DNA of 64,000 nucleotides from Saccharolobus solfataricus P2 (GTDB lineage: Archaea > Thermoproteota > Thermoprotei_A > Sulfolobales > Sulfolobaceae). Positions within the stretch are counted from its first letter, which is position 1; each line of letters begins with the position of its first letter. Made by a program: the position numbers and the translations under genes. The stretch is taken from NCBI RefSeq assembly GCF_000007005.1, contig NC_002754.1. The stretch is one strand, 5' to 3'. This document shows positions 1,015 to 26,708 of the stretch, in pieces. A model generated the notes under the pieces. It did not search any database. It saw only the letters and a list, made by a program, of their open reading frames with translations, and was not told where the DNA came from.

Positions 1015-1103
1015 ACTATTATATTACTTAAGTAAAAGAATATATAAAGTTAGCGTGTTGCGAGTTACATCAGAATTATACAAAAGTTTATAGTTAATTA
1101 CGT

Positions 1104-2021
1104 CAGTATGGGAATCTCATTTTTCTGATATAAATGATAATATATGTAAGATTGAACCACACCAGTTTTATTCAAATATAACTGCATATATTTTATGAAA
1201 ATGACAGTTAATAAGTCAGTTTTCAATAGCAGAATATAAATATATAGAATTAATTTCACGTAGCTGGAAGGAGGTGCATAGGGTTAGCTGGAGTTTAGGG
1301 GAATGGCGTCTTCACTTCACGGAACGCGCGTCCTTGTTCCACTCTTACCTCCCGATCGAGGAGATTCGAGAGGGAGACCGAGAACTCCCACAACTTTACC
1401 TTCCTCCAAGAGCGGATCAAGAACCAGACATTCAAGAGAAGATAGGAAAGCAGAACGAGAACCAGTTCCTTCCTCACGTCACAAGTCCTAGTCCTGATCC
1501 TGAACTCCTCAAGAGAGCGGAAGGCGTTCTCTATCCCCCACCTCTCCCTGTACATCTCGGCAAGGACTATGGCATCATAAAGATCCATCTCCCTCCTCAC
1601 GAGGAAGGCAATAATCTTGCCGTCTTCCTTCCTCAGGATAATGAGATAAGCTCCACTCCCATATCTCACGCAGAGAAATCCAGTATATCTAACTCCGCCA
1701 AAACTCACATCCACATCCTGCAACATTCCCTTGTACTTCTTGTACATCTGGACCTTGGCAGATATGACGAAGTCCAAGCCCAACTCCAAGAGGTATCTAA
1801 TCACTTCGTTCACTGCGAACTCCTTGTCCGCGAAGACCATGACGAGCCTCAGCTTGTCCTCCTCCAACTCCTTCACGATTACCTCCATCACCGCCTTGAA
1901 ACCTTCAGCTACGTTCTTCACGGTCACTGGGATCACGTCCAGGAAGCTCCTCGTCCTCCCCAGGAGGAAGATCGCGGCTTGAACCAGTCCCCACGACGTC
2001 CCCTTAGTTGGCTTTATCCTA
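1104..2021 (-). mobile_element. ISC1359-like ISH3-family IS, 5' truncated by SM2
   Basis: TIR CAGTATGGGAATCTC preceded by ACGT; transposase fragment 1295-2050 near-identical to 57647-58774. Confidence 0.9.
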
Positions 2022-2339: not shown

Positions 2340-2470
2340 GTAATATTCTCCTCAGCTGGGGAAAAATGGTCGAATGGGAAATTGAAGCAAAGTCTTCGGG
2401 CGAGGGCGTGACGAGCCCCTACAGTCGGACTGAACATTGTGAAAATATTCACGAATATAGGTGTGACACA
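2340..2470 (+). ncRNA. Candidate bridge RNA (target- and donor-binding loops)
   Basis: ACTGAAC (2429-2435) equals the right end; ATATAGG (2455-2461) complements the left end CCTATAT; GCGAGGG (2400-2406) complements the target flank CCCTCGC. Boundaries approximate. Confidence 0.8.
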
Positions 2471-3069
2471 AGCGTAGGGGTAATTGGAATAGACGTATCA
2501 AAAGAACACTTGGTAACAAGTAAGGGGAGGGTGAGAAAATTCACAAACAACGAGAAGGGCTACGAAGAAATACTAACCATGAAGCCAAACATCATCGTAA
2601 TAGAACCCACAGGAGTATACTCAACAAGACCTTGCCAATACTTCAAAGAAAGAGGAGTGAAAGTCCTACTAGTCAGCCTTGCTATGGAAAGAAAAGGACG
2701 TAAGGGGAAGAAAACAGATTTTTACGACGCAGAAAAACTTGAAAACATGGTAAATAAGTCTAGAGAATACGTTAACAACCCCTTGAAAGAGTTAGTATCA
2801 CTCTACCTCTTCATGAAGGATGTGCAAACGAAACAAGAGAACAGGTTAAGGAGAGCTCTCTTCCTCGTGAGCGACGAGGAGAAGTTGAGCGAGGAGAGAT
2901 TGGAGAAGTTCTCTAAGGGAGACTTCTCTGACGTAAAACTGTATCAACTGGAATACACTGGTACAGTACTACGTGAGATTCAAGTCCTAGCGAGGACACT
3001 AATTCAAACACGAGAAGAGTTGAAGGAGGTGAGGAAAATGATAGAGGGTAATGTGCCTCAAGACCACGT

Positions 3070-4118
3070 TAGTGTTTCCGAAAAGTTTATAGATTAGTAT
3101 TACCAGATTGAACTATGCAAGATTTGGTTCAAGCTTATAAGGAAGAGAAGAACGCGAGAATTAAGGAGAGGATTCTTGCGGTGAAGCTGCACGTAGTTGA
3201 TGGTAAATCGGAGAAAGAAGTTTCGAAAATGCTTAACAAGGGCTATTCCACGATAAAATTGTGGATTGGCAAGTACAAGAAAGAAGGTCTTGATGGACTA
3301 AAGGACAAGCCCAGATCAGGAAGACCCAGAAAAGTAGAAGAGGAAAAGATAAAACAAATTCTGGAAGATAAGCCCCAAAAATACGGAATACAACAAGAGT
3401 ACTGGACAATGAAAACACTCAAGATAGCACTACAAGAACAAGGAATAGAATACAAGAAATCCAGACTATACGAACTAGTCCACGAACTAGGATACAACCT
3501 AGTAAAACCCAGACCTACCAACATCCAAGCAGAAAAGGACAAGTGGGAAGATTTTAAAAAAAATAAAGAAATTGGAAAGAAAGGCACTATTCTTTCTAGA
3601 CGAGTGTAGGACAGTAATTAGCACGTCAATTAAGAAGGTTCTAGCTAAGGTTGGCAGTAAGCCCGTAATGCGCGTCAATATAGGTTTTTCCTCAATCTAT
3701 GTTATTCTAGCTATAAACGCTTGGACCGGCGAAGTAGTGGTTTCTCTTGCTAAAAGGCCTAACTCTGAATCCGTTAAGTATTTCTTGAGGTACTTTAAGA
3801 GGCGTGTGGGTAGTGGTAGGGTTTACATGGTCATGGATAATTACTCTCCTCACAAGACTAAGGGTACGCTTGAGGTTTGTCGCAGGAAGGGTATTCATCC
3901 CGTGTTTACTCCTCCTTACTCGCCTGAGCTTAATATGGCTGAGGCGGTCTTCAAGTCCCTCAAGAACTACATGAGCAATAAAATATTCTATACGATAGAA
4001 GACGTTAAAAACTGTATTAAACAGTTCTTTGAAGAAAATAAGTATAGATTTAATCTTAATGCAATAACATACCTAGGATTAGATAAAATTGAAGTCTAAG
4101 AACTTTCCGGAAATACTA
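3070..4118 (+). mobile_element. ISC1048-like IS630-family IS
   Basis: 1049 bp, TAGT..ACTA TIRs, GT duplication; HTH ORF 3115-3609 and DDE ORF 3572-4099 joined at an A-run. Confidence 0.9.
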
Positions 4119-4493
4119 GTGTTACTCACGATTTCCGGAATAGGGAAACTGGCAGCTGGGATTATAATTGGGATTGTGGGTGATATTAGGCGCTTCCCAA
4201 GACCTGAATCCTTCGTTGCTTATTGCGGTTTAGACCCGGTAGTTGAGAGGAGTGGTAGGATTGAGGTTAGAAAGGGTATCTCCAAGAGGGGTAACAAGTA
4301 TTTGCGTAGCTTGTTTTATTTCCTTGCCGAGACTCAATATTCGCGTAACCCTACTCTCCTTAAGCTCCACGAAGCTCACAAGGACAAACTGAAGGGTAGG
4401 AAACTGTACACTGCCTTAGCTAGGAAGTTGGCTAGGATAGTGTGGAGTGTTTGGTATAATAATAAGCCTTATGAGGTGAAGTGACCCTCCCCT

Positions 4494-4520: not shown

Positions 4521-4577
4521 GCAATAGTAGCTGATACTATGCTCAAAATTCGACCGAAAGATTTATTACTGAACGCC

Positions 4578-4722
4578 CTCGCACATAAGCTTTTTCAGAG
4601 GCTGTTTTCATGTTCTAATTCCTTAGCTACATCTCGATCGAAACGATTAATTGTGAAAATTTCTAGTTTAATTTTATTTTACTATATGATATCGAATAAG
4701 ATGACTGCATGAGAACACTCCC
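4578..4722. mobile_element. Part of ~330-bp MITE (GGGAGTGTTCTCA TIR family); left part at ~2250-2310
   Basis: Homologous to 36078-36405; split by the IS110 insertion. Confidence 0.75.
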
Positions 4723-4738
4723 TATAATTTAGAGAGTG

Positions 4739-5338
4739 TTATTTGGAAGTTTGCCTTATATCCTTTAACACATTTTCTATTTCCTTGAATAGTTCGTCAA
4801 TAGCCTTTTCTATGCAGTTATCTTTTATCTTTTTTAACTCCTTTTTATATTCTTGACAGCATCCTCTGCCTCTAAATTCTTTTATCTGCTCATTACAAAT
4901 TTTTAAAATAAAGTCCTCAATACAGCAATAATATCCGAGAAAGACGAAGTACATACGAAATTTTTTACTTCCTACTGAACATGAAAATCTATAAATATCA
5001 TATTCATTGTTAAGCTTTATCACGTCAGATGTGTATATTCCGTAATCTTTTGCAGTTTCCTTTACGCATTCTACATAATCTAAGGTACAGTGTTCCTTAT
5101 CTATAAATATTATGTAGTTCAAGGAGAATCTCTTAACATCGTTTTTAACAAACTTAAGTACACTCTCAATCCCAATACCTATAGGCAAACTTTTACCCTT
5201 AGCACCGCTCTCCGGAATAAACAGTAATAGCTCACAGTATTTATCCTTGTTCTTCTCAAGAGCGTTTCTGACAATCTCCCTATCAAAAGATCCGTCTCCA
5301 AAAACTATTTCGGTTGTAGCATTACTGCTGAATTTCAT
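4739..5338 (-). CDS. TOPRIM-like (DUF3226-like) protein, partner of ABC ATPase
   Basis: IVFGDG-FD, IFIDKE and CCIEDFI motifs; abuts upstream ATPase. Confidence 0.6.
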   Translation of the reverse strand: MKFSSNATTEIVFGDGSFDREIVRNALEKNKDKYCELLLFIPESGAKGKSLPIGIGIESVLKFVKNDVKRFSLNYIIFIDKEHCTLDYVECVKETAKDYGIYTSDVIKLNNEYDIYRFSCSVGSKKFRMYFVFLGYYCCIEDFILKICNEQIKEFRGRGCCQEYKKELKKIKDNCIEKAIDELFKEIENVLKDIRQTSK

Positions 5339-6732
5339 CAGTGTATTTTTAATGCAGTATATCTTAAATCTTCATAGTATAGCCTATCCAAAACCTCCTC
5401 AGATGTAAGAACTTCATATTTATCATCGTTAATTAATATAAACCTAACCTTATCCGACCGCTTTTCAGCTAAATACGCGTAAATATCACTGCTTTGTGTG
5501 GTAATAAGTATTAAGTCAACGTCTATTTTCAGTAGAAGATCATAGAACATCTTAAGCAAATCCGGATGCAATGCGAAGCCCTCCAGATCATCTATCAGAA
5601 TAATTCTCGGCTGGTAAATTACATATAGCAAGATGAAATTCAATAAGCTCTTATAACCATAACCAAGTTCGTTGATTGACACATCAGTTCTGTCATTAAA
5701 AAGCACCCTAAGTTCATTCCCAGAAGATAGATAAACGTAGAATATGTTAGGGTCAAATGAGTTCAATAATTCAGTAACTTTACGTAAACTTGATTTCACG
5801 TAAGGGAGTACCTTATCGTCAATCACAAAGTCAATATCGTGGGAGTATATTAAGAGTACGTTCACATCTGCAGACCTATTAACTTGTGAGTAGGAAAACT
5901 CAGCCTTATAGTAGGTGTAGTTTACAAACAGTTCGGTTTCAGCAATTTCTGTTGAGATATTCCCTCTGAACTTCCTTATCTTATCCTCATTTTTACCTAA
6001 CATTGCTATAGCTTCCAATATGGTTGTCTTCCCTACGTTATTCTTACCCAGAATTACCCCTATTTTAAACTCTGGAAAAATCATCTTGAAATCCCTAAAC
6101 CTTCTAAAATTACTTATCCTAATTCCAATTCCCAGGCTTGACAGTCGTTCCGGTAAGCTTAATATATACTGAGTGTTTACATAAGGAGAGTCGTAAAGCC
6201 TGACAAATGCTCCTTTACCGTATTTGTAAATCCAGGTGGAATAAAGCGTGTAAGGATGGCTCTTTACTATACTTATGGGTATTAACAAGGGATGAGGTTC
6301 AACGGGTCTCCACGAATCTTTAGGATCATATTTTAACATTTCACCCACTATGGAATTTTCACTCTTCTCAGACAGAGGTTTATGTCCCATTACGCTTATA
6401 GGCTTAAAAGGGAAAGGATTTCCCTTACTAAAGAGCTCCTTTTTTATACCATCCTTCTCGATGTAGAAAAAGGGGACATCGCCAGTCCAAATTACAACAC
6501 CTCCTCTTTCCATAAATTTAAATAGCGGGGTCTCATTTACGGGTATTTTAGGATATTCATATAGGGAATATGGAATAACGTCCGTACCGAAAATTAGGAA
6601 AGCCCTCTCTTTTTGAGAGTTAACCCAATCAACTACTGAATTATAATCTACGACTTTTACCTCCTTAAGTGGCTTACTGCAAAGTTCGTTTGCCCAACTG
6701 TATGTTTTACCGCAATAGATTGCCATTTCCAT
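5338..6732 (-). CDS. Unknown N-terminal domain fused to AAA_15/AAA_21 ABC-type ATPase
   Basis: Walker A GKNNVGKTT, LGYGYK signature, LIDDLEG Walker B, TTQS; extra ~200-aa N-terminus with FMERGGVVIWTG. Confidence 0.8.
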   Translation of the reverse strand: MEMAIYCGKTYSWANELCSKPLKEVKVVDYNSVVDWVNSQKERAFLIFGTDVIPYSLYEYPKIPVNETPLFKFMERGGVVIWTGDVPFFYIEKDGIKKELFSKGNPFPFKPISVMGHKPLSEKSENSIVGEMLKYDPKDSWRPVEPHPLLIPISIVKSHPYTLYSTWIYKYGKGAFVRLYDSPYVNTQYILSLPERLSSLGIGIRISNFRRFRDFKMIFPEFKIGVILGKNNVGKTTILEAIAMLGKNEDKIRKFRGNISTEIAETELFVNYTYYKAEFSYSQVNRSADVNVLLIYSHDIDFVIDDKVLPYVKSSLRKVTELLNSFDPNIFYVYLSSGNELRVLFNDRTDVSINELGYGYKSLLNFILLYVIYQPRIILIDDLEGFALHPDLLKMFYDLLLKIDVDLILITTQSSDIYAYLAEKRSDKVRFILINDDKYEVLTSEEVLDRLYYEDLRYTALKIH

Positions 6733-6914: not shown

Positions 6915-7210
6915 AAAGTATTAGTAAAATTAAATTAAACTAGAAATTTTCACAATTAGTCGTTTTAATCGAGATGTAGCTAAGGAATTAGAACGTGAAA
7001 AACGGCCTCTGAAAAGCTCATGTGCGAGGGTTATGAAATCTTTTTGTGGTCGTACTAGAATGAGCCTCGTAAACCCTTTCACATAAGCTTTTCTAAAATA
7101 ATGTCTTTGTTCAAATTTCTATATCTTAAGCGTTAAACAAGAGTTTTTCCATATTACTCCAATATTTTTACAAATATTTTTCGAATTTCATGACTGTTTG
7201 AGAACACTCC
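6915..7210. mobile_element. Inverted copy of ~330-bp MITE
   Basis: Reverse complement of 36078-36405; one TIR kept (GACTGTTTGAGAACACTCC). Confidence 0.75.
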
Positions 7211-7735
7211 ACTCTAACAATTCTTTAATCTTACTCTCATCATAATTAACGTATATTTTGCCATTTTTCTTCTCTATAATTACATATTCCTTCAAAAGAC
7301 CCGCATGAGCTATGAAATTCCTCTTTAACTCCTCTTCCGACAATTGTTTACTTCTTCCTTCCTCATCTTCGCTGTAAATTTCACTATATTGCTTTCTTTC
7401 TCCCTCTTTCAGATCTTTTGCCAAATTATAAATAATATTAATCTCCCTACTTATTAACGGTCCGGCGTTCATAGAAAACTTTTCTAAAATCTTTCCAAAC
7501 TCCTCAATCTCCTCTTTAGTGTTATCCTTAACCTTACTACATACATAATCACATATAACATCAACCCAGGCACGATCTGGGTAAAGTTTCTCATTTATCT
7601 TTATTTCTTTACCTTCAATTTTCACATTATTTAGGAAATACTGATAGTAATCATTATTAAACTCCTTTTTCTCTTTACATAAGCTTACTTTTAAATCTAC
7701 GCTTGATTTCGAATTTAAGTAAAATTGATAATCTT
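7188..7735 (-). pseudogene. csx1: csx1 C-terminal remnant (HEPN only)
   Basis: RNFIAHAG RxxxxH motif typical of Sulfolobus Csx1; frame closed at ~7735, no CARF domain; last codons come from the MITE. Confidence 0.75.
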
Positions 7736-8010
7736 AACAGCTTATTAGTCTAAGGTATTCAAAAAAGTAGCAAAAATTCATATGTGTTCCCCAAACAGCA
7801 AAATGATTAACTTAAAAGGTTGAAAAATACGCTAAAAGCGACTCAAGCATGGTATACTTCTTTATCCGCTTGATAACGTTTAGGCGTTCATCTTTAGCTG
7901 CGGCTTCATCAGATATAATGTTGATTTGAAATAGATATGAATCTTGCTGATAGTCTATAATGATAAAAGATTTAGCAAAATATGATTAAATTAATATTTA
8001 GTGACCCATA

Positions 8011-9351
8011 TTGGTTGACGACACGCATAAGATTTTTCAGAACTGTGATGAGAAGAACGATATATATTATCCAATATGCAACAAACTACAAATACTTTGC
8101 CCACGACTAGTACCAGGTCCTCTATGGAGGCTCAGCATAGCAAATATATCTAGAATGAGTCCACAAGCAGCCCTAGCAATATGCGACTCCTGCTCTGAAA
8201 TCATAGAGAAAATATCTCAATATTGGATGTCTCTAGATAGAAGTGGAAAATGTGAGGTATGCAATAAACTTGGGAGAGAAATAGACGAGGTCTGGCTGTA
8301 CTGTGTAATCGATGAAAACGGGAACATAGTAAGTAATATAACAACAAAAGAAAATTTCACACTAACAGAGTCAAGACTTTATAAGGGCATAGCTTATCTT
8401 CAAAGGCTCGAACTACTATGTGAGAAGTGCCACATAGCGAAGCACCAAGGCTATGCATTAGTTCATGGGAGAAAGCAAGAAGCATTAGAGCAATTGGCTC
8501 AGATACATAAACTAGACCTTAATAAAACAGAAGAACTAGTAAAAGAAGCCTTCTTTATACATGGAAAAATAAGCAAAATAAAAGAGTGGACGATAAAGAT
8601 AGGAGAACTAAATGGGTTAGACAAAGAGCTTAGACTGAGGGTAGAGGAGTTACTAAATATTATGTATAGGAAAGGGTTCTTTGTAGACGGAAGATGGTTA
8701 TATTATCAATACCCTAATTACTACCAAGAGGTAGAACCTAGAATAATACAAGAAACTATGACTGTACTAGCTAAAACTTCGAATAAGGCTGGAACAACTA
8801 ATGTAGCTGATAAATGGATAGAGAGTTTGCTAGAAATTATTAGGGAAGAATTAGAACCAAAAGGTATACGCGTACTACCTCACGAATTCAAGCTATTTAT
8901 TAAATATCTCCTAGAGGATAAGAAACTTAGTAATCTCTTGCAAGGAATGTTTAATTATGCCTTACAGGGCAAGTCAGAACTTTTTGCGACCTATATTTCC
9001 TTATTGGATTATGATGACTTAATAGGTAAATGGATGGTTTTCGTTCCTACTGACCTCTATCCCAAAATATTCCGATATATGCTGGAGGCTTTGGAAAAAG
9101 CTAAGCTAGCATATAGTGCCAAAATAGTGTCTTCAAGAGACCAGTATACCTCTAAAGGAGAGTTACCCATAATAATATATGTTCCGGTATCTTTTGCTAC
9201 TAGCTACATTGCAGAAGTTGCTAAAGTAATGAAAAACACGCTAGAAAATCATCATATAAGTAAAAATATGTTCTTTAAACCAGACCTATTCACAGAGAAA
9301 GGCATATACTCAAGCAATGCAAATTACAGATCGTACATATATATTTACTAG
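8011..9351 (+). CDS. HNH-like Zn nuclease domain fused to DUF1917 (eIF4E-like fold) domain
   Basis: LVPGPLW, CEVC, EIDEVW, LLCEKCHIAKHQG; C-terminal GKWMVF, YSAKIV, FKPDLFTEKGIY. Recognised by motif only. Confidence 0.7.
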   Translation: MVDDTHKIFQNCDEKNDIYYPICNKLQILCPRLVPGPLWRLSIANISRMSPQAALAICDSCSEIIEKISQYWMSLDRSGKCEVCNKLGREIDEVWLYCVIDENGNIVSNITTKENFTLTESRLYKGIAYLQRLELLCEKCHIAKHQGYALVHGRKQEALEQLAQIHKLDLNKTEELVKEAFFIHGKISKIKEWTIKIGELNGLDKELRLRVEELLNIMYRKGFFVDGRWLYYQYPNYYQEVEPRIIQETMTVLAKTSNKAGTTNVADKWIESLLEIIREELEPKGIRVLPHEFKLFIKYLLEDKKLSNLLQGMFNYALQGKSELFATYISLLDYDDLIGKWMVFVPTDLYPKIFRYMLEALEKAKLAYSAKIVSSRDQYTSKGELPIIIYVPVSFATSYIAEVAKVMKNTLENHHISKNMFFKPDLFTEKGIYSSNANYRSYIYIY

Positions 9352-9513
9352 TGGTTCCATGCATAGTTGGTATAATATTAAAGCGCTAGGATTACAGTTT
9401 AATATCGGATTAATTAACAGTAGGAATCTTAATTCTTGCTCCCTTCTAAGGAGGTAATACTTTGTTAATCTTACTTAACGTTTATTAAAGATATTACTTC
9501 AATAATAATTTTT

Positions 9514-9744
9514 ATGGAAAATAAGATGAAGTACAAGAAACTTTTCGTAATTATGCGATTTATGAATAGAGCTACAGGTAATTGCTGTAGTCTGGAGTAC
9601 TTGACAGAGAAGACATCAGTAGATAAGGAAGAGGTGCCAGTGCATTTATACAGGTTAACAGACAGGGATATAATCGGGAGGAAGTGCATAAGGGTAGGAA
9701 AAGAGAGAATGTATTGCTTAAAGTATAAGGAGGAGATGTTATGA
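9514..9744 (+). CDS. Small winged-helix protein
   Basis: SLEYLTEKTSVDKEEV HTH-like segment followed by wing strands. Confidence 0.55.
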   Translation: MENKMKYKKLFVIMRFMNRATGNCCSLEYLTEKTSVDKEEVPVHLYRLTDRDIIGRKCIRVGKERMYCLKYKEEML

Positions 9745-10039
9745 GCGCATACAAGAATTTACTGCAAATTGGAATGCAAGTTTCTAGTGGAGCAAGAGGC
9801 TTTCTTATCTCTTTAGCTTTCAGAAATACGGACCCACAGAACAGTATTGAGATATGGTTTCCTATAGATGGATATCTTGACCTACAAAGAAACGAGAAAG
9901 GATATATAAGGAATGAGTACGTTTGCAGGATTTTAGAAACCAACCCATACGTTGCATCTCCTACGGGGAATTCACGCAAAACTAGAGAACGAGTAAAACC
10001 AAGTATTACAAGAGAAAAACAAATAAGCAAGAAAGAAGA

Positions 10040-25539: not shown

Positions 25540-26487
25540 CTATATGTATCCCACCCAACTTAATGGTTCGTCTATTTCACTTATTTCTGAAAGTTTGTAC
25601 TCCCTTGACGTACCTCTCGTAGATAAATATATTATTTTGGCATTACTATCATCAAAGACTTTCGTCATCATCTTTATAACCTCATTCGAGTGTGTTGTGA
25701 AGACAATTTGTGAATTTTTGCCTTTATCTTTCATTACGTTAAAAATCTCTAAGAGTAAGTCGGGGTGAAGAGAGTTCTCAATCTCGTCTATTAGAAGAAG
25801 ATTAGAATATGTTAGGCTATCAATGATTAACTCCTTTTTTAGTAAACCTCTTCCAATTACATATGCTGGCTTAGTTTCGTTTTCCTTAACATAATGCACT
25901 TTATATAAACCCATCTCATCTGGCAAAATTTCAAAATCTGACTTAACTCCTTTTTTCTTTGCAGAACCTATTATCCTTTCTGGATAGTCATAAAAATCGA
26001 AATAAACTGATAGATACACTGGTAAAAAGTGTTCCATAATTTTATGTCTCTTGATTAACTTAACTTCTGGTACACGTATAGGAACAGAGATTGTTTCCTT
26101 AGCTAGGATTCCACTCGATAAAGATATTGAGGCTATCTTCTCATCTTTTTTAGACTCATCTTTTAATAAATAAATATCAATTTTTTCCTTCTCTTTTCTT
26201 CTGAACGATAATTTAATTCTCTCTCCGCCATGAAGTCCTAATTCAACTTCAGAATCTGTTAACGATAAAAATGCTGAAATCATGTCACCTCTGCTGTTAA
26301 ATGCGTAAATCATTAATGAACTAATATCACTTTCGCTATAGTCAGAGAGGAAAAGCGAGGAGAAAAATAATGCTTCTAAAAATGAAGTTTTTCCGGTTCC
26401 GTTCCTACCTATTATAGCATTAATTCTCCCCAAATTAACATTAAGTTTCAGACCCCTAAAATTGCCAATCGAAATATTTTCAATCAT
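25540..26487 (-). CDS. AAA_15/AAA_21 ABC-type ATPase
   Basis: GRNGTGKT, IGRG, LLIDEIENSLHP, TTHS. Confidence 0.9.
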   Translation of the reverse strand: MIENISIGNFRGLKLNVNLGRINAIIGRNGTGKTSFLEALFFSSLFLSDYSESDISSLMIYAFNSRGDMISAFLSLTDSEVELGLHGGERIKLSFRRKEKEKIDIYLLKDESKKDEKIASISLSSGILAKETISVPIRVPEVKLIKRHKIMEHFLPVYLSVYFDFYDYPERIIGSAKKKGVKSDFEILPDEMGLYKVHYVKENETKPAYVIGRGLLKKELIIDSLTYSNLLLIDEIENSLHPDLLLEIFNVMKDKGKNSQIVFTTHSNEVIKMMTKVFDDSNAKIIYLSTRGTSREYKLSEISEIDEPLSWVGYI

Positions 26488-26531: not shown

Positions 26532-26708
26532 CTGGGGGTCGGACTTTCATTGAGATTTCATGAATTTGTATTCAACCCCTCGTCCTCATACCCCTTATTT
26601 TCCTCCCCATGCCGTCTACGGGACTAACTCCCTTCAAGGACATGAGGAGTTTCATCAGGTACCTTCCTCCCCCTCACATTGCTCACAGAGTTCATTGTGG
26701 CACCCTCT
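26532..26708 (-). mobile_element. Orphan tnpB 3' end / right end (IS607- or IS605-like)
   Basis: GC-rich island ending TGAAAGTCCGACCCCCAG, similar to 28416-28519. Confidence 0.5.

Follow-up and report, generated by a model that had tools for sequence, protein, structure and literature searches.

The stretch analysed here, 64,000 nucleotides (nt) of the Saccharolobus solfataricus P2 chromosome (NC_002754.1) to which we refer as the window, carries on its plus strand an uninterrupted frame of 446 codons plus stop at positions 8011–9351. The encoded protein displays an N-terminal HNH-like module with a presumed zinc site, a middle region and a C-terminal BLES03/eIF4E-like domain, and it combines known folds in a variant architecture that is as yet uncharacterised. 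An earlier reading of the DNA alone, hereafter the original prediction, had placed an intact gene at this position and had listed the motifs of a Zn-HNH family in its N-terminal half and of DUF1917/BLES03 in its C-terminal half. The open frame agrees with the first of these claims, and all the listed motifs were found where they had been placed; besides, the NCBI annotation of the P2 genome (AE006641.1, 1558011–1559351) gives an identical 446-aa product. The surrounding DNA is AT-rich and of the Sulfolobales type. The start codon is TTG and an in-frame ATA stands directly upstream of it, at the position of the ATG of the closest relative, with which the gene shares 92.5% DNA identity. The gene is made up as follows (AF2, AlphaFold2; dN/dS, ratio of non-synonymous to synonymous substitution rates):

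8011–9351, plus strand: whole gene, 446 codons plus stop, TTG start.
8011–8622, plus strand: N-terminal module, residues 1–204, delimited by hhalign, by hmmscan with phrog_5200 and by AF2.
8095–8127, plus strand: LCPRLVPGPLW, residues 29–39, invariant in the family and equivalent to ELVPxxxW of the stand-alone relatives.
8251–8262, plus strand: first CxxC (C81-E-V-C84), invariant, part of a presumed Cys4 zinc site.
8284–8301, plus strand: D92-E93-V94-W95-L96-Y97, with Asp92 at the position of the HNH general-base His.
8416–8445, plus strand: L136-C137-E-K-C140-H141-I-A-K144-H145, the second CxxC and the helix His at the HNH metal-binding position.
8623–9015, plus strand: middle region, residues 205–335, delimited by AF2, dN/dS and hhalign against a bacterial fusion.
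9016–9348, plus strand: C-terminal BLES03/eIF4E-like domain, residues 336–446, delimited by Foldseek, PF08939 and the alignment to 1ztp.
9028–9030, 9121–9123, 9178–9180 and 9277–9279, plus strand: conserved residues K340, K371, Y390 and K423 of the C-terminal domain.
Within the C-terminal domain: G339-K340-W341 and F-K423-P-D-L-F427-T, motifs conserved in the alignments of homologues.

In comparison with the closest relative, dN/dS is 0.43 overall at a synonymous divergence (dS) of 0.117, with values of 0.29 for the N-terminal module, 0.86 for the middle region and 0.46 for the C-terminal domain. The gene is under moderate purifying selection, and the overall ratio is the reason why we consider the constraint to be only moderate. 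A word-indexed search covering 5.8 billion proteins retrieved 61 full-length relatives with 32–88% identity, while of 1.84 billion cluster representatives, scanned exhaustively with HMMER, only 117 matched, 41 of them with E<1e-30. According to genome and metagenome scans the hosts are thermophilic Thermoproteota, namely Acidilobaceae, Desulfurococcales, Stygiolobus and other Thermoprotei, together with hot-spring metagenomes. The family is thus a small one, restricted to thermophilic Thermoproteota. In alignments of 31 and of 46 members (the latter 46 homologues at 35–89% identity), the motif residues listed above are invariant or nearly so, and the motifs are not due to chance since this holds across the 46 homologues. 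Searches of the literature found no characterisation of the family, in line with the earlier statement that none was known. A strain-specific presence of the gene, deduced from its absence in the species-representative genome, was dropped as a conclusion, because the genome collection may mask the window itself.

The N-terminal module has distant relatives, matching residues ~20–205, among stand-alone proteins of 150–190 aa. Profile–profile alignment with hhalign joined the module to this stand-alone family with a probability of 99.95% (E 9.8e-38, 137 columns, residues 27–202), and the whole protein matched the phrog_5200 "HNH endonuclease" profile in hmmscan with E 4.9e-10. As the hhalign match runs from end to end, the first ~200 residues represent one inherited module carrying two insertions. 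The stand-alone proteins follow the pattern ELVPxxxW ... CExCG ... xHExWxY ... LCxxCHxxKHxG ... helices ... W, and LVPxxxW, CxxC, xExWxY, LCxxCHxxKHxG, a helical tail and a final W are collinear between phrog_5200 and the archaeal module; the latter differs by its insertions (residues ~48–60 and ~101–125) and by its fusion to two further domains. No biochemical characterisation of the phrog_5200 family was found in the literature. The link to HNH proteins is transitive: Pfam HNH matches the 446-aa protein only at E 0.42, with 2 of 31 family members reaching 2.5e-5, and it is the phrog_5200 members that match other HNH PHROGs down to 2e-10 and, weakly, Pfam HNH, Endonuclease_7 and the HNH region of IscB.

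The archaeal family departs from phrog_5200 at a key position. The invariant His of the stand-alone proteins aligns with the first H of Pfam HNH in one of them (P0131), whereas the archaeal family displays Asp92. Profile–profile alignment puts D92-E93 onto the invariant H-E, and D-E-x-W-x-Y was present in 34/34 readable archaeal lineages; the original prediction had indeed noticed DE where HE is expected. The H-E pair is retained in a distant archaeal-like relative (P0122) and in the bacterial fusions described below. The exchange of His for Asp gives the module an acidic D-E-(D/E) cluster. All four cysteines (C81, C84, C137 and C140) and H145 are invariant, and H141 is nearly invariant.

In the AF2 model of residues 1–204, obtained with a predicted local distance difference test score (pLDDT) of 92.8, strands at 90–100 and 125–136 are followed by the CxxCH helix at 138–144, and the beta-beta-alpha core of the HNH/His-Me finger superfamily is seen in the AF2 models (pLDDT at least 92). 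Canonical Zn HNH and His-Me finger nucleases (PF01844, T4 endonuclease VII PF02945, the HNH domain of IscB/Cas9) have in common with the module this predicted core, the CxxC...CxxC zinc site, the His directly after the second CxxC and the metal-ligand His on the helix. They differ from it by the general-base His on the first strand, which is replaced by Asp92, and by a middle Asn that is not conserved in the family; Foldseek gave no HNH match. Since the structural search returned no significant match for the module, its HNH assignment rests on sequence profiles. Direct sequence searches of the PDB, run with the protein as well as with profiles of the family, gave nothing for this part either, and the protein has no match in NCBIfam. 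Going by the profiles, the module is a member of the HNH superfamily that does not have the canonical general base. Of the proposed HNH-like nuclease, a Zn module of the HNH superfamily therefore stands, while support from Foldseek does not come forward, and the term nuclease is uncertain because Asp replaces the general-base His. Nevertheless, a functional site is suggested by the strict conservation of D92, E93, W95, Y97, the four cysteines, H141 and H145. If this site is active, the invariant Asp at the general-base position of an otherwise strictly conserved Zn-HNH site would be interesting for its mechanism.

The C-terminal half gave clearer results in structural searches. With the full-length AF2 model (pLDDT 92.4, predicted template modelling score 0.91), the top three PDB matches of Foldseek were chains of 1ztp, human BLES03/C11orf68 (E 1.3e-3, probability 1.0), and the next ones were dozens of eIF4E and 4EHP structures, with E ~1e-2 over ~100–140 residues. 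The eIF4E-like fold attributed to this half is therefore borne out, and the structural searches led to 1ztp and eIF4E for the C-terminal half and to no significant PDB match for the N-terminal half. PF08939 (Bles03, formerly DUF1917) matches residues 338–429 with E 5.7e-4 and 20.3 bits, below its cut-off of 23.1 bits; at E<=0.01 it detects 17 of 31 family members, with a best E of 1e-7, which together with 1ztp substantiates the DUF1917/BLES03 motifs that had been noticed. The only match in the direct PDB sequence searches was 1ztp, at E=2. For the 446-aa protein the DUF1917/Bles03 sequence signal is real but weak, and the fold search with the predicted structure confirms the assignment.

In the hidden Markov model (HMM) alignment to 1ztp, GKW falls on GKW and FKPDxFTxKGIY falls on YKPDVYTYLGIY, while K340, K371, Y390 and K423, conserved in the archaeal family, correspond to K128, K159, Y175 and K204 of BLES03 and make up a surface on the beta-strands of the domain. 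The protein thus shares with BLES03/C11orf68 (PF08939; 1ztp, 2q4k) the GKW and KPDxFTxxGIY motifs and the Lys/Lys/Tyr/Lys set, but the match covers only the C-terminal ~90–110 residues (profile positions 163–253 of 255) and its Pfam score lies below the cut-off. With eIF4E/4EHP the domain has in common a curved beta-sheet with helices (Foldseek probability ~1.0, target TM-score ~0.4–0.48); at 9–20% identity and no family-level sequence signal, this likeness is one of fold only, and it is from the fold that a possible response to RNA 5' ends or a nucleotide, as put forward in the original prediction, is deduced. To our knowledge, archaea do not have 7-methylguanosine caps. Additional weak matches were a Foldseek hit to 4rsx, an effector of Pseudomonas syringae pv. 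tomato DC3000, and a Pfam HopA1 match in one family member. A computational study (PMC4159009), the single relevant paper that our literature search found on BLES03, predicts that BLES03 acts as a phosphothreonine lyase and places K128, K159, Y175 and K204 in the site. The same search found DUF1917 mentioned in no paper, no biochemical function given for C11orf68, and no protein of the BLES03/DUF1917 family, human or microbial, with a demonstrated biochemical function. The archaeal protein would be a tractable thermostable protein with which to find the ligand of BLES03-type domains. Between the two modules, the ~130 residues of the middle region (205–335) are mostly helical with a small hairpin in the AF2 model; they are missing from the bacterial fusions and are the least constrained part of the protein.

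Fusion of the two modules is not restricted to archaea. In two proteins of bacterial type, P0136 (318 aa) and P0159 (343 aa), a phrog_5200 module with intact His is followed directly by a Bles03 domain, whose Pfam match in such fusions reaches 1e-16, and hhalign aligned both ends of the archaeal family with P0136 at 99.3%. These proteins have the same two modules in identical order as the archaeal protein; they differ by the intact His (ECHELW, DAHERW), by having no middle domain and by their neighbours, for example CoiA_N. That the fusion recurs speaks for a functional link between the two modules. The N-terminal module also occurs fused to HhH and RNase_H_2 domains (P0134, 713 aa), and phrog_5200, like the archaeal module, combines with exonuclease domains or genes. 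Other phrog_5200 architectures are a tandem duplicate (P0165, 547 aa) and a combination with DUF5710 (P0157). Using tblastn, phrog_5200-type genes were found in 145 phage and 28 plasmid records, the carriers being Vequintavirinae, Nickievirus and Campylobacter phages and plasmids of Pseudomonas and others, and they are present in bacteria as well; the phage and plasmid genes are usually annotated as "HNH endonuclease" or "hypothetical". In Vequintavirinae, such as Salmonella phage vB_SEnST11_KE22 (locus L108, 2884–4451), the phrog_5200 gene lies directly upstream of a 373-aa exonuclease gene (phrog_107), in a block where RuvC-like, endonuclease VII and DNA-polymerase exonuclease genes are found as well.

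In order to survey the neighbourhood, ~118 loci were gathered and dereplicated at 85% identity of the 446-aa protein homologues, giving 43 lineages, or ~44 with the sister strain of P2 described below. The sole widely recurrent neighbour is a ~200-aa DEDD 3'-5' exonuclease of the RNase_H_2/PolB-exo family, marked by the motifs DxE, FD and HxxxD. It adjoins the gene in 16 of the 43 lineages (17 of ~44 when the sister strain is counted), usually at less than 100 bp, and it takes one of three arrangements: on the same strand, either upstream or downstream, or downstream in convergent orientation. Together with the BLES03–HNH fusion, this linkage points to a nucleic-acid-related role for BLES03-like domains. 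Proteins of ~70 aa and ~190 aa are encoded directly upstream of the gene in six lineages (L001, L003, L010, L016, L033 and L084; at 8973–9185 and 9197–9763 in L016); neither has a family match, and both could belong to the module as additional parts. In 6 lineages the gene has type I restriction-modification genes (HsdR/M/S, YgjP) next to it, on one side or the other, and toxin-antitoxin genes, an SNF2 helicase gene and metabolic genes make up other contexts. Genes of the cmr type were found nearby in 2 of ~44 lineages only, the window itself and L054, where cmr4/cmr5 lie ~6 kb away. The survey therefore returned some neighbours of defence type, as had been anticipated, but hardly any link to cmr.

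The P2 locus itself is rich in insertion sequences (IS) and contains the following features:

2366–4484: IS110 element split by an IS630-like element, with the IS110 parts at 2366–3097 and 4089–4484.
3067–4122: left copy of the IS630-like element, with HTH and DDE_3 open reading frames, inserted into the IS110 element.
4739–6732, minus strand: genes of an AriA/AbiLi/PtuA-like ATPase and its 199-aa partner.
7188–7625, minus strand: csx1 remnant, the HEPN third only (model positions 267–392 of 396), with the CARF part missing.
7681–8010, plus strand: region retained upstream of the 446-codon gene, shared with the sister strain, with a breakpoint at its left edge.
9514–9744, plus strand: plrA-type plasmid regulator gene (PF05584), with a DNA match over 9438–9747.
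10479–11535, minus strand: right copy of the IS630-like element, the inverted twin of the left copy and 98–99% identical to it.
~11586–12457: IS110-like remnant.
13182–20360: cmr7b-like gene, cmr4, cmr5, ISC1217, cmr2 and cmr3.

The annotated locus agrees with the picture of an intact gene among decaying neighbours, with csx1 on its left and cmr on its right. Two contigs of a sister strain (Logan SRR10258013) reveal how this arrangement came about. One of them (L112) is 100% identical to window positions 7681–9983, the 446-codon gene included. To the left of 7681, however, it carries a divergently transcribed gene for a divergent 223-aa member of the exonuclease family (contig positions 2–670, minus strand; HMM E 8.6e-48) and not csx1. 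As the sister strain has the exonuclease where P2 has csx1, P2 has lost the partner at a breakpoint between 7680 and 7681; in agreement with this, tblastn with the exonuclease and with the 190-aa and 70-aa proteins found none of them in the window. The adjacency to csx1 is a product of rearrangement in P2, and the type III-B position of the gene is therefore incidental. The region had been called a CRISPR/defence island: it is a genuine defence- and IS-rich region, but a functional meaning of the position between csx1 and cmr, seen in so few lineages and brought about by rearrangement, is not supported. The change from ATG to ATA upstream of the start codon was considered as a sign of decay specific to P2 and rejected, since the sister strain, which has kept the exonuclease partner, also has ATA. 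The final 34 nt of contig L112 correspond to a short repeat with further copies at window positions 1100–1137 and 20362–20399.

The second contig (L114) is 100% identical to P2 across cmr7b–cmr5, up to window position 15353. Past this point it carries two genes, one of 440 aa and a RAMP gene of 294 aa, which P2 does not have at the ISC1217 boundary, where ISC1217 (15347–16493) follows cmr5 and is directly followed by cmr2. By the usual order of cmr genes these two should be cmr1 and cmr6. Neither was found in the whole 64-kb window, so the Cmr module of P2 is incomplete. On the other side of the 446-codon gene, the plrA DNA is 70–73% identical to that of Sulfolobus/Saccharolobus conjugative plasmids, which identifies the plrA gene as a plasmid-derived remnant.

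Altogether, the earlier observation is confirmed and its interpretation partly supported, and we propose that the protein belongs to an accessory module for processing or degrading nucleic-acid ends, in which a BLES03-fold domain and a Zn-HNH-like module normally work with a DEDD 3'-5' exonuclease. It is the best supported of the explanations considered; even so, we hold it tentatively and judge it slightly more doubtful than probable. The N-terminal module, a Cys4 Zn beta-beta-alpha unit, descends from phrog_5200, with the His changed to an invariant Asp and H141 and H145 kept. The BLES03-like domain may bind a ligand with a phosphate group, the likeliest being the end of a nucleic acid or a nucleotide, and once bound could position or gate the HNH-like module on the nucleic acid; the product would then be handed over to the separately encoded exonuclease of RNase_H_2/PolB-exo type. 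The gene pair behaves like an accessory component of variable regions, found among type I restriction-modification and toxin-antitoxin genes, plasmid remnants and IS elements, and this pattern agrees with a function in conflicts with foreign DNA or in its processing. In P2, a rearrangement dating from the activity of IS elements removed the exonuclease and set the orphan gene beside the truncated csx1.

Several results weigh against this proposal. As the general-base His is missing, the predicted nuclease activity is not assured. Foldseek with the N-terminal module alone gave no significant PDB match and none to an HNH protein (best E 2.6), and against BFVD it gave one unnamed viral model at E 0.036. 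We know of no ligand for any protein of the BLES03 family. About 60% of the lineages have no adjacent exonuclease, several of them with long flanks, and two diverged lineages show the gene within a conserved Topo VI/eIF1A/RIO1 housekeeping block. Finally, the scan of IMG/VR found no copy of the family on viral contigs, and no model of PADLOC-DB 2.0 matches the 446-aa protein, its exonuclease partner or the 190-aa and 70-aa proteins.

Alternatively, the HNH-like module might be catalytically dead and serve as a Zn-dependent binder of nucleic acid or protein, with the chemistry left to the BLES03-like domain, which might for instance carry out a lysine-dependent beta-elimination or a reaction of phospho-lyase type. 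The family-wide exchange of the general-base His speaks for this, and the conserved Lys/Lys/Tyr/Lys set is the proposed lyase site of BLES03 (PMC4159009), to which the weak effector (4rsx) and HopA1 matches may be added. Yet D92, E93, W95, Y97, H141 and H145 are invariant or nearly so and suggest a live site rather than a relic, the bacterial fusions retain the His, the lyase proposal is purely computational, and no kinase or lanthipeptide-like neighbours were present in the loci examined. We regard this possibility as rather unlikely.

The housekeeping synteny with Topo VI, eIF1A and RIO1 in two diverged homologues also raises the possibility of a chromosomal DNA repair or recombination factor of hyperthermophiles, which might for instance clean damaged or blocked ends with the 3'-5' exonuclease. 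That the partner is an exonuclease, and that phage phrog_5200 genes stand amid replication and recombination genes (exonuclease, RuvC-like, endonuclease VII), would suit such a function. A housekeeping role appears distinctly improbable, however, given that few families were recovered from very large databases, that the contexts vary widely and often lie beside restriction-modification, toxin-antitoxin, IS or plasmid genes, and that P2 lost the partner with no evident replacement within the window. Of a similarly low probability, in our view, is the more specific possibility that the protein and the DEDD exonuclease form an undescribed two-gene archaeal system against viruses or plasmids. In such a system an eIF4E-fold reader, recognising the 5' end of an invader, a modified nucleotide or an alarm nucleotide, would license an Asp-type ββα-metal nuclease, and the exonuclease would degrade the products.

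The gene could also be a selfish or plasmid-borne one, for example a homing-type endonuclease or a conjugative-plasmid function of no benefit to the host. Its variable genomic positions, the plrA plasmid remnant and IS elements that the P2 copy abuts, and the annotation of stand-alone phage relatives as HNH or homing endonucleases speak for this; we consider it very unlikely, as neither sequenced Sulfolobus plasmids nor viral contigs yielded a copy, the gene is not inserted inside host genes, and the protein is under purifying selection although the catalytic His is lost. Least credible, and highly improbable, is a CRISPR type III sensor-nuclease along the lines of the original prediction, in which the eIF4E-like domain, a fold suited to nucleotide binding, would sense cyclic oligoadenylate, nicotinamide adenine dinucleotide or an RNA 5' end and activate the HNH module for Cmr: the position between a csx1 fragment and cmr genes in P2 and the cmr4/cmr5 genes near the L054 homologue speak for it, but cmr is a neighbour in just those two lineages, the identical gene of the sister strain adjoins the exonuclease and not csx1, the general-base His is absent, and neither a CARF or SAVED sensor domain (Pfam, NCBIfam, PADLOC) nor any PADLOC match was found in the protein. 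The case calls for caution in CRISPR annotation, since a gene within a cas locus of the IS-rich P2 genome need not be CRISPR-associated.

A number of further observations were made in the window. The inverted pair of IS630-like elements brackets a 6.4-kb segment that comprises the ATPase gene pair, the csx1 fragment, the 446-codon gene and plrA. Within this segment, the 464-aa ABC-type ATPase matches the AriA, AbiLi, PtuA and GajA models (best 2.8e-17), while the gene of its 199-aa partner overlaps that of the ATPase and its product has no match. The two genes are flanked by 109-nt inverted repeats (4576–4684 and 6922–7030) that are 87% complementary, and they may constitute a mobile defence cassette. 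A second AbiLi/AriA-like ATPase gene lies at 25540–26487 on the minus strand, ~16 kb from the 446-codon gene, with a best PADLOC E of 4.8e-23, and the Rfam family Sulfolobus sRNA133 (Sso133) matches positions 26603–26665 on the same strand with 56.5 bits.

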